Below are positions 35,166 through 39,510 of a stretch of 64,000 nucleotides of DNA, piece after piece. The DNA lies in NCBI GenBank assembly GCA_037447605.1, contig CM074807.1:310001-374000 (forward strand). The letters are read 5' to 3'. The DNA comes from Zygnema circumcarinatum SAG 698-1b. Lineage: Eukaryota; Plantae; Zygnematophyceae. Position 1 is the stretch's first letter; each line of letters begins with the position of its first letter. Under the pieces are notes generated by a model. That model made no database searches. It worked only from the letters and a program-made list of their open reading frames with translations, and had not been told where the DNA came from. Position numbers and translations under genes: made by a program.

Positions 35166-36126
35166 TTACGAGTGGTTTTGAACTGAGCTGGAAGTGGGGA
35201 GGGTTGAAAATTGCCTTTAAAGTCGTCTTTAAGGTTGGCAGGTTCGTTTGAACCTTCAGGGCTTCTACCGTTAGCAAGGCCCATGACTGCATGGGAGCTG
35301 TAGGGGTTAGGACGGCATGGCAAATAGGTGTTTGCTTTGTTATTGGATGGTGGATAGGATGAGAGCATGCATGCATGTATGTGAACATGCATGGATGTTT
35401 ACATCCTATTATCATGCATGATGTCTTGTCATGGTGTTGAACACAGATCATCGGTAGTTGCTATAAAGCAGAGGACGCAGTAGTGAAGCTACAACGTGCA
35501 GATGATGATGAGGTTAAGAAATTGTGGAGGGTATCTTAAGAGTTCAAATAGTACAATGCATGTGATCATGCAACAGACCTTTCCTTCCTTCGAAAGGAAA
35601 GAATAAGTAATTTATTAGAAAAATAGAGAGCACCTTGGAGCACTTATATTTCAATAAGGGCTTAAACATCTCTGTATTGTTGGCATCCTTATAGAAGATA
35701 TTGCACACTTTCCCTTCAAGAATTGTAAACTGCTATTTTTACATTTTTTGAAAGCCAAGAAAGCCCTAAAACGACCCTAAAACCCCTCTTGAATCAAAGG
35801 TTTTTGGTCGGTCGGTCGGTCAGTCTTTCTGTCAGATGGTTGTCTAAGTGCCTGTTTGTTACAAGGGGGAGAAGGGCAGTTCTGCTGGCACTGAAATATT
35901 GACCGATTTCTACATCTACCAATATACAAGATGATGAATAAATCGGCTAAGATCCCACCAGCCAGCACCAGCAATTATTTGCTCAGAACTAATATGACTG
36001 AAGATACTCGCATAGTTGAACTATAAGAAACGAGTTCCATAGCGGAGGTTTGACGAAGGGTTGAGAGGCAGCAGGTTGAGTACAGTAAGAGACGAAGTCG
36101 ATGCATAAAATATTGAAGGTCATTTT

Positions 36127-37555
36127 TCAGAGAGGAGGAGGATGAGGAGCAGGAGGGCGGGCGGCAAGACGAATGGAATCCAGCCAATGGAGAAGCTCCG
36201 AATTTGGATCATCTTCCAATTCTGCCCTTTGAATACAGAAAAAAAAAAGTCAATATCTTCATCAAACAATTTACAGTACCTCAGTCAGAAATTAGACTCA
36301 ATTAATCAAATCCCCCAAAACACAGCATGCAATGACAGACTTGATTTACTTTTCTGGTAGCAACAACCTCTGAATCGCTCGTCAACATTGCTGTATCTGA
36401 TATTGAAGAAATGAAAGCAGCAAAAGTGTGTCACATTCACAAGCTTCACCAACTCAATTCCAGCCACTTCCTGCACTTTTTCCTTCTTTAGAATTTATTA
36501 CATCTGCCCTCTCTCTTTGGCACAAATCAAGCAAGCACGAATTTTAGGGTTTCGGACGTACGAAGGGAGGCAACTGTGAGCTGGTTTTCATTCCGATAGA
36601 TAGAGGGGGCACCTTGAATGCGGATTAGGAAGCCCACTTTTACCTGTATTACGCAAAAAAGAAAGGAACGAAGGAAGCTGCTTCGGCCGACTACAAGTAT
36701 AAATCAGAACCTCACAAACAAGGCAACCTAAAAATTCGGCCCTTTTTCATGGCAGAAATAGCAGACAACTTAAAATAAGAGCTGAGAACTATTGCCTTAA
36801 TAGAGAAGCTTTCAGACGTTCTACATATTGTGCAGAAGCATCCTCCCTGGACGGAATAAGCAAAAAGCTTTGAAAGGGGATGGAGGAAAAAAGGGAACCT
36901 TCGCTTCACTTTCTCGGCGGAGGACCTGCTCAACAGCAGAATAGGAATGCCGCCAGAGAATGCATGGCAAGCAAGCAGTCCCATCGTCAACTGTCATAAA
37001 GAATAAAAAATAAAAATGGAGGAAAAGAGGGAGAGATCATTGCATAAGTATGGCCGAGAAACTGCAGGTGTGACGAAATAGGTCAATCGAGCACTTTAAG
37101 AGAGCTGCTGCAAGCGCTGCAAGCGCTAGAAATAGGAAATTGCAGGTCCTGCTTAAAGGCAAACGACGAGATAGAACGAACTCACCTAGAAAGCGAACAA
37201 ATTCCTCTTTCCGAAAGACATCGACTACAATTCCCATGACTTCCACTTGAGCAACAGGCCTCCCTCGCCATAGCATGGCACCTGCCCAGTGGAAGTCATA
37301 TTTGCACTCACTTTGATAATTCTATGGAATGTTTTGAGCTCTAACTTCCAATGGACACTCCTGCCAATGAAACTGTCGAAATCCTTCATTTTCTCTGCGC
37401 CATTTGAGAGATCGTGATGTACCGGGAATGTCGCATGCCGGTTCCATTGCGAGAACAAAAGCAGCTGCAACGGAAATACAAGATGTGAAGAGTGGCTCAA
37501 GGCCCCAAAGAAGAGTGGATGGAACCGCATCCCTTTCTCTTGCATGCAAATCCAT
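36127..37555 (-). CDS. STN1: CST complex subunit STN1 (single OB-fold form, 165 aa)
   Basis: Exons 37555-37423, 37281-37186, 36990-36899, 36643-36562, 36221-36127 (498 nt, phases consistent). Motifs: LLWGLEPLF, GRPVAQVEVMGIVV, FLVDDGTACLPCILW, VKVGFLIRIQG...YRNENQLTV, EDDPNSELLHWLDSIRL. These match STN1 signatures (GHPI.QVDV.G.V, VDD.TG...C..W, DPN.E.LHWL). Confidence 0.9.
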
Positions 37556-37878
37556 TCCTGCTGAAATAGCCCACCCCTCTCAAAGCAGAAGCAACATGAC
37601 TTCGGATTCGTCAAAATCGTGAATAACGCGAATGCTTTCCAGAGACGAGTTGATATGTAATACGAGGCTTTCACTCGTCACTTTGAAGACTCCGCATTCA
37701 AATCCTATCCCTCACTGTTCGGGTGAGATTCGAGCACACTCTTGATTGTCATTTGCATCTCCCTTCCGCTCAACTCTGCCGTTAAATCGCCTCCATATGC
37801 TTCCTTTTTTCCGCGAGTTTAGCTCGCACTCGTTTTTCCCCTCCCTCTTTCTCCGTCGTAAGCTGAGAGCTTCCCTAC
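37556..37878. promoter_or_regulatory. 323-bp shared bidirectional promoter/5'-UTR region of STN1 and TEN1
   Basis: Entire interval between the divergent ATGs (37555 on -, 37879 on +). Promoter function is inferred from position. Confidence 0.7.
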
Positions 37879-38947
37879 ATGGCTGCTCAGAGCTTGAAGC
37901 CAGGGCGGATTATGCATCTGGATGAGGTCTGTCGGCAAGGCGCCGCCACCCAAGGGATGTCCGTGCGAATCATGGGCCGGTATCTACTCCTCCGATTCTG
38001 CTGTTATTGAGTGTCAGCAATAAGTATAGCTTTTGGAAGGCTTTCAGTTGACATGCAGGACATGAGCGCAGAAAGACAGCCAGGAATTTTTCATCCACAC
38101 CTTCATGACTTTCTACCTTCATGTGTATGAAGGAAAGATTTTAGGGTTTGTTTGAATGAAGATGTACGTTCATCATCAGTTTCTACTCGAACCATATTCT
38201 GTTAGATTTTCTTCTCTATGTAATCTCTATTTATTGCCTCTGCTCAGGTCTGTCTGTTCCTGTCAGACTTTGTCGGGAAAACCTTCTAAATGTCACACGG
38301 ATCCTCGTTGTGTCCTATTTTCGCTTGTCCATGTTGTCGATGCATTGCAGTGTTCCTTACTCTCTTTGTGAGGGAAATAGAGGTGCTATTGGTGCAGGTT
38401 GGAGTCGTACAATGTGGAGACTGGGCACTGTCAGATTGCATACAAGGGAGAAAAGCTGACAGTGGATGTTAGTCATATATTGGGAGCTGCACTACGGCCT
38501 GGATCCCTATATCAGTTCATTGGTGAAATGGGCCGAGAACCAGCCATGGGGGCAAAGGAGCAGGCAAGATTGTGATCTCTTTCCTATCAGACCATCATTC
38601 CAACTCTTTTCTTTTCCTCTGATTTTGATATATTTCCGCTCCTTTTGTTTTTTGATGGTCCGATCCTGTTCGATCAAGGAGATAGTTGCTCTCCTTTCAT
38701 GCGTTCTCTCTTGCCTTCTCCTTTGCACTTCTCCTTCTGTTCAGGGACCATCTTAAAGGACAGGAAGCCTTCTCTGAATGCGATATATCTAACGAAACTG
38801 GCCTCCGTTGTATGATTACAGGAACAGTTCATACTGAGAGCTCGCATTGTGCGCAATGTAGATGGTCTCGACGAGGATCTCTACGAACAAGCAGTGATGC
38901 TAAGAAGGAAATTTGAGTCGGGCAAACATGCTGAGATAATGAGATAA
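37879..38947 (+). CDS. TEN1: CST complex subunit TEN1 (128 aa)
   Basis: Exons 37879-37979, 38398-38563 (GC donor) and 38828-38947. Translation: MAAQSLKPG..MHLDEV...GMSVRIMGRLESYNVETG...LTVD...RPGSLYQFIGEM...FILRARIVRNVDGLDEDLYEQAV.LRRKF. This matches plant TEN1 as recalled (GSIYQFIGEL, ILQAR..RNVDG.D..LY). None of the exons is called in its coding frame in the supplied ORF track. Confidence 0.88.
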
Positions 38948-39510
38948 ATACTCTAAGAAAGCAATGCCCAACTATGCATCCGAACACTTCAAACCCTCTT
39001 TGTGAGATATAAAGAATTGATTACTACATTGTAAACTCTCATTACTTCAATAAGGCACATTGCCTCTTCACGATGCTGGAGTCTCTTTTAACAGTAAAAA
39101 AGCACACAATAAAGGAAACATCTCCCTCTCCCTCTCCCTGCCCCTCGCCCTGCCCCTCTCCATTTCCCCTCCCTCTCCCCTCCTGCCTATCTCCCACTCC
39201 CCCGCTCTCAACTTTTCCAATATTTCAGGCAAACGATCCCAGAATATGAGTGACCTTTCATTAGCAACGACAGAGACGGGCGCCTTCATTCAGGGCCCAT
39301 CTTTTTATTTACAAATTCGGCCCTATGTCACAATTGGAGGCTCATTTCAACCCTAAGTTCAACAGATCCTTGACCACTTCCCAGCTTTGAAATTCTAATT
39401 TCAAAACTGCTTAACTGTCCAACCACGACTCTATGACTTCTGACCAGCCAAATCCTCCTATTTTCAATGTACCTGTGAACCCTAAAGGGCTAAAACAGGG
39501 CCCCCTTTCC

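Follow-up and report, generated by a model that had tools for sequence, protein, structure and literature searches.

A transcribed head-to-head pair of genes for TEN1 and a probable STN1 in the alga Zygnema circumcarinatum

The genome of Zygnema circumcarinatum SAG 698-1b contains, within the 64-kb stretch analysed here (contig CM074807.1, positions 310,001 to 374,000 of the forward strand; hereafter the 'window', whose first letter is position 1 in all coordinates below), two small genes that lie head-to-head on opposite strands: one for TEN1 and, running the other way, a probable STN1. STN1 and TEN1 are the two small subunits of CST, a complex that helps DNA polymerase alpha-primase to fill in the telomeric C-strand, and within which their products form one heterodimer. 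An earlier note, written from the letters of the window alone, had drawn attention to the pair, suggesting both a single bidirectional promoter and, possibly, an arrangement inherited from a streptophyte ancestor.

Assembled contigs from four runs of the same organism (one labelled as RNA, three carrying no recorded type) were aligned over positions 36000–39100. Spliced forms are present in all four, with joints found for each of the six introns, their registers being subject to two-base shifts permitted by the alignment tool (Table 1). Working leftwards from the centre of the locus, we see that the minus-strand gene has five exons, each of its four introns running from GT to AG on the coding strand; in the contigs these appear as skips of 141, 195, 255 and 340 bases with CT..AC ends on the plus strand. 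The reading frame stays open through the joints to give a protein of 165 amino acids, split into five pieces of 27–44 residues, exactly as had been modelled from the letters. On the plus strand, the three exons proposed for TEN1 are likewise borne out; the predicted length of 128 residues is not, the protein having 130 amino acids and its last exon an acceptor at 38822 in place of one six bases further on (38828) that has no RNA support—the sole correction to the original observation. The second TEN1 intron, with its GC donor, is spliced in all four runs; its joint was reported as 38560/38819 with four ambiguous letters, and we chose the register 38563/38822 because it is the only one with canonical-like ends (GC..AG), the frame being kept.

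Table 1. Positions of the two genes and of the interval between them, in window coordinates
Feature	Position	Strand	Details
STN1-like gene, coding part	36127..37555	-	5 exons, 165 aa
STN1-like exons, stop included	37555-37423, 37281-37186, 36990-36899, 36643-36562, 36221-36127	-	RNA joints
Spacer between the two ATGs	37556..37878	.	323 bp; must contain both 5' leaders and promoter(s)
TEN1 gene, coding part	37879..38947	+	3 exons, 130 aa
TEN1 exons, stop included	37879-37979, 38398-38563, 38822-38947	+	RNA joints
TEN1 intron 1	37980..38397	+	GT..AG, joint 37979/38398, 418-base skip
TEN1 intron 2	38564..38821	+	GC-AG, joint 38563/38822, 258-base skip

Each of the two ATGs, at 37555 on the minus strand and 37879 on the plus strand, has an in-frame stop ahead of it and no other in-frame ATG in between, and the 323 bp between them agrees with the distance first noted. 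All four runs contain transcripts of both genes, which answers the possibility, raised at the outset, that one or other might be silent. The remark that TEN1 is easily overlooked also holds good: with a floor of 60 amino acids none of its three exons is listed as an open reading frame (ORF), and at 20 amino acids all three are.

Several further features of the transcript contigs can be recorded here. In run X1 only, TEN1 intron 1 shows a minor alternative donor at 38163/38164, joined to 38398 (GT..AG); this isoform retains intron sequence with an in-frame stop and is probably unproductive. A single 8817-base contig in run X6 links exons 2 and 1 of the minus-strand gene (intron 1 spliced) to the spacer, to TEN1 (intron 1 retained, intron 2 spliced) and to sequence further right, covering window positions 37186–39100 and beyond. 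Its rightward part is probably a convergent NADH-GOGAT transcript; the contig itself was chained together from overlapping transcripts during assembly, and offers no evidence for a single RNA. A CT-rich low-complexity tract (ctccct and gcccct repeats) lies at 39100–39210, some 150 bases past the stop codon of TEN1. Lastly, three RNA runs from 2017 under the same species label (X8–X10) share no sampled word with this 3.1-kb stretch, the corresponding figure for seven runs from 2019–2025 being 78–86%; the older runs may derive from another strain, or from another species carrying the same name.

The identity of the plus-strand gene can be established exon by exon. Searched singly, its three exons match the Pfam family Ten1_2 (PF15490) in order, at profile positions 3–28, 31–80 and 84–115 of 117, with scores of 14.3, 26.2 and 36.8 bits that sum to 77 bits against a whole-protein cut-off of 27. 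A query of 1.84 billion representative proteins with exon 2 led to P0002, a 124-residue protein from algal transcript contigs, and a profile made from this protein and three relatives brought in 252 proteins of the Ten1_2 family, many of them named 'CST complex subunit TEN1'. Local BLASTP gives end-to-end alignments of the spliced 130-residue protein to P0002 (56% identity, E 2e-50), to the TEN1 proteins of Sphagnum (48%, E 7.5e-33) and Klebsormidium (41.5%, E 2e-28), and to the proteins of Spirogloea, Riccia, Selaginella and orchids (E 1e-27 to 1e-31); in a tree the spliced protein pairs with P0002 (support 97/98), the remainder of the tree leaving its placement unresolved. It thus has the features of a TEN1 built from a single oligonucleotide/oligosaccharide-binding (OB) fold, i.e. 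a length of about 120–130 residues matched throughout by Ten1_2. With the profile check recommended in the earlier note finding the three exons collinear, and with end-to-end matches to annotated TEN1 proteins, we regard the assignment of this gene as TEN1 on the basis of its sequence as firm. TEN1 of the window itself did not appear in the matches from the protein collections searched, and is therefore apparently missing from them, in agreement with its being easy to miss.

The three coding blocks of TEN1 are common to this alga, Klebsormidium and Sphagnum, and the gene is also split in Calypogeia. In Riccia fluitans it is one uninterrupted exon (L018:10001-10360), the product of either intron loss or retrocopying. 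The Spirogloea gene is SM000166S02480, at s166:64511-65627. Two brown-algal models from EukProt (P0042 and P0057; 222–230 residues) carry ATG12 (PF04110) together with Ten1_2, and are either fused models of neighbouring genes or real fusions.

For the minus-strand gene the evidence is concentrated in exon 2. Searched against the PDB, this 31-residue exon returns five matches, all of them human STN1 chains, over residues 53–79 of the OB fold (E 0.14–1.9); against Pfam its sole match is Stn1 (PF10451; E 0.23; 10.8 bits, below the cut-off of 21.5). No RPA32 or RMI2 chain was matched in the PDB search, even though that database contains many. Since STN1 had been hypothesised before either search was made, and was the only answer from each of two libraries, we consider the result to be much stronger than its E-values suggest. 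After the matched strand comes a VDDGT motif, as it does in STN1. The predicted protein also has the architecture of the plant-type subunit—around 160 residues, comprising an OB fold without the C-terminal winged-helix domains—its 165 residues comparing well with the 159 of the representative of a Streptophyta cluster labelled 'putative CST complex subunit STN1' (Atlas), one of the OB-fold families of the RPA32/RMI2/STN1/TEN1 kind returned by a feature search. The protein-collection search accepts lengths of 0.55–1.75 times that of the query, for which single STN1 exons are too short; a pseudo-spliced two-row alignment of the exon 2 stretch with exon 3 (A3) gave 68 candidates and no match, scoring worse against the PDB than exon 2 by itself; a metagenome scan with exon 2 found nothing; and no database record was found for a 71-residue ORF in an intron of the locus.

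Might this gene instead encode another small OB-fold protein, of the RPA32 or RMI2 type, so that the apparent adjacency of two partners would be illusory? Such a reading could draw on the fact that the family signal is sub-threshold and confined to exon 2, and on the feature search, which ranks clusters of RMI2 and RPA3 above that of STN1; set against this are the exclusivity of STN1 among the PDB matches, the single Pfam answer and a size that fits the short plant-type protein, and we judge it improbable. Sequence therefore points, with good confidence, to STN1, the identity of the regions beyond exon 2 being inferred. Accepting this, the pair of identities originally put forward divides into a firm TEN1 and a probable STN1, the latter based on matches that stay below threshold. 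Both genes are probably the single-copy orthologues of the alga; STN1 would be the short form known from plants, and each of the two proteins would consist of one OB fold.

Turning to the interval between the genes, we see that the spacer is rich in CpG, its observed/expected ratio being 1.17 where that of the window is 0.62, which puts it at the 97th percentile among 323-bp windows, and that in each of the four runs a single contig spans it entirely. The spanning contig of run X2 begins exactly at the boundary of STN1 exon 1, extends over the spacer and the first exon of TEN1, and continues through a splice joint into the second. At 15.2 it has a mean depth close to that of exon contigs (15.3–17.5) and above that of intron contigs (3.5–8.9), contig depth being a crude measure whose values are not comparable as expression levels. 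This exon-like depth suggests that the spacer is mostly transcribed, and that the two 5' ends abut or overlap. The spanning contigs also bear on whether the adjacency could be an artefact of a mis-join in the assembly, for which we find no supporting point: independent contigs, in four runs from four studies, cross the spacer with no differing letters, leaving this explanation a negligible chance.

Close divergent pairs usually share regulatory DNA, and a CpG-rich spacer of this length would have room for no more than a single promoter region and a pair of short 5' leaders; given such limited room, STN1 and TEN1 most likely draw on the same regulatory sequence. A bidirectional promoter common to both genes is accordingly plausible in that it would fit the geometry, the base composition and the RNA contigs that cross the spacer, and the two genes may be co-regulated. 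When the spacer was scanned for motifs of the E2F, telo-box, MSA, site II and TATA kinds, no E2F site, telo-box or TATA came to light; one site-II-like and one MSA-core-like hexamer are present, no more than would be expected by chance. As judged by its ATGs, the pair falls within the usual definition of a bidirectional gene pair, namely opposite strands with transcription starts no more than 1000 bp apart (PMC2648788; for studies in rice see PMC5045660 and PMC4997330).

The synteny survey proposed in the earlier note was run on Klebsormidium, bryophytes and Micromonas, together with further lineages, by inspecting 8–10 kb on each side of TEN1 (about 200 kb in total). Flanks came from Klebsormidium nitens, two Sphagnum assemblies, Riccia fluitans, Calypogeia fissa, Selaginella moellendorffii, Micromonas pusilla, two Mamiellales-like picoeukaryote metagenome contigs, one further eukaryote and the chytrid Spizellomyces; none contains STN1, as judged from tblastn, from a VDDGT-type motif and from the Pfam families assigned to adjacent genes, so that at 10 TEN1 loci no STN1 lies within 8–10 kb. 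With the spliced STN1 as query, tblastn produced just proline-run or other chance matches in these flanks. The motif V/I/L-DD-G/S-T/S-G/A/S, which occurs once in the six-frame translation of the window (in STN1 exon 3), is absent from the TEN1 flanks of the other genomes. Where annotated, the neighbours of TEN1 elsewhere are unrelated, and include a PHD protein, porin, metallophosphatase, TFIIB-like protein, peptidase M16, oligopeptide transporter and transposase, amongst others. Two unannotated neighbours were considered as STN1 candidates and rejected: that in Sphagnum is a Q/S-rich protein, and that in Calypogeia has a weak zinc-knuckle match. A metagenome scan with the TEN1 profile yielded nine marine picoeukaryote contigs with TEN1, none of which carries STN1, and the transcript contigs of the nearest relative (L001–L006) share with the window just the coding part of TEN1, with no antisense STN1.

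Published accession numbers offer a view that is independent of our own detection of STN1. Those listed for STN1/TEN1 in Table 2 of PMC3400083 (Selaginella EFJ12878/EFJ26866, Ostreococcus ABO95476/ABO98342, Arabidopsis NP_563781/NP_176022) are thousands apart, as are those for Populus and Sorghum, which we read as meaning that the two genes are not neighbours in any of the five species; for Arabidopsis, this agrees with the earlier note, which places its genes far apart. The note knew of no report of the linkage, and our full-text literature search found none either, whether of STN1–TEN1 linkage or of a shared promoter.

A different gene order around TEN1 does recur elsewhere: TFIIB-like, TEN1, peptidase M16, PEX11 and PhyH follow one another identically in Micromonas pusilla (L017) and in picoeukaryote contigs L011 and L014, a conserved microsynteny of Mamiellales type.

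Taken together, the absence of the pair from the flanks of the sampled lineages and the distant published accessions do not support the suggestion of an ancestral streptophyte arrangement. Nothing but the pair itself speaks for a streptophyte or green-lineage arrangement kept here and lost elsewhere, the three coding blocks shared with Klebsormidium and Sphagnum showing that the gene is old and not that the linkage is. Klebsormidium, four bryophyte assemblies, Selaginella, Micromonas and related picoeukaryotes all lack it, as by their accession numbers do angiosperms and Ostreococcus; retention in this alga would require many independent losses, and we consider such an origin very improbable. 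Because the pair is absent in all sampled lineages, it is not a general feature of streptophytes or of the green lineage. Instead, the adjacency would be derived, confined to this lineage and arisen by rearrangement; the pair has the look of two genes brought together locally, and not of an ancient cluster.

How far chance could account for such a juxtaposition depends on how it was found. Two named genes are expected to be adjacent with a probability of about 2/N per genome (around 1e-4 for 10–20 thousand genes), but this pair was picked post hoc from a very large scan, and so adjacency by itself does not exclude chance; given a scan of that size and the thousands of partner pairs that are known, one chance adjacency is unsurprising. 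Divergent pairs with shared promoters are themselves common, and it is rare for co-expressed neighbours to be related in function (PMC5572396), which makes a pair encoding the two partners of one dimer the less usual case.

It is against this background that one may ask whether the pair is a selected unit of co-regulation, conserved head-to-head across the alga's class with one promoter balancing an obligate dimer. In its favour are the heterodimer that STN1 and TEN1 are known to form in CST and the very short CpG-rich spacer, crossed by RNA contigs and flanked by two genes transcribed in every run; yet every other lineage sampled manages without the pairing, no relative with the arrangement was found (in a sample without zygnematophyte genomes), and an adjacency of this sort is expected occasionally by chance. 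We therefore hold this to be unlikely, albeit the least so of the alternatives. A more specific form, in which the class-wide pair is a dosage-coupling unit whose one short CpG-rich promoter and overlapping 5' ends set the stoichiometry of the heterodimer—a single-copy parallel, outside the histones, to the divergent histone pairs—is somewhat less likely again. Our preferred reading is that this is a genuine, expressed STN1–TEN1 divergent pair, likely with shared regulatory DNA, whose adjacency is derived and lineage-limited, and we consider this, as a whole, to be probably correct.

Saying this, a number of points count against that reading. The STN1 call is based on one 31-residue exon with sub-threshold scores, exons 1, 3, 4 and 5 giving no PDB or Pfam match when searched singly. 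The introns too are covered at low depth, such that coverage of the spacer could come in part from pre-mRNA or DNA. As regards the lineage-limited origin, the flanks examined extended for just 8–10 kb; the genome comparison took in no zygnematophyte, Coleochaete or Chara genome; and the nearest TEN1, that of P0002, is known from transcript contigs of roughly 1 kb alone. STN1 was sought in the other genomes without a positive control for a diverged form, and the protein is fast-diverging, with 10–20% identity between lineages (PMC3400083).

Comparison with known systems helps to place the pair. The classic parallel is that of the divergent histone pairs (H2A–H2B and H3–H4) of yeast and many other eukaryotes, in which obligate-dimer partners are expressed from a short common spacer, an arrangement thought to balance their dosage. 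The locus described here shares with these the divergent transcription of two obligate-dimer partners from a short spacer; histone pairs, however, are ancient, widely conserved and repeated, whereas STN1–TEN1 is probably single copy and so far seen in one genome only. The locus resembles bidirectional gene pairs in general in that its members lie on opposite strands with 323 bp between their ATGs, the spacer is rich in CpG and both genes are transcribed, but most such pairs are functionally unrelated (PMC5572396), and the products here would form one heterodimer. When set beside the plant CST subunits (Arabidopsis At1g07130 for STN1 and At1g56260 for TEN1; single-copy across plants, PMC3400083), the two proteins are alike in being short and, in the case of STN1 probably, of single OB fold, TEN1 with a full-length Ten1_2 match and STN1 lacking C-terminal winged-helix domains, and both are expressed; the difference lies in their placement, the genes being non-adjacent in Arabidopsis, Selaginella, Populus, Sorghum, Ostreococcus and the sampled genomes, and divergent at close range in this alga.

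At present, the value of the locus lies mainly in RNA-supported models for two small and easily overlooked telomere genes, the result also showing that their linkage is not general in the green lineage. Were the pair to prove conserved in related algae and its members co-expressed, it would be a clear-cut natural case of a shared promoter keeping two subunits of one essential complex in balance, as well as a convenient handle on the regulation of CST in the algal sisters of land plants.

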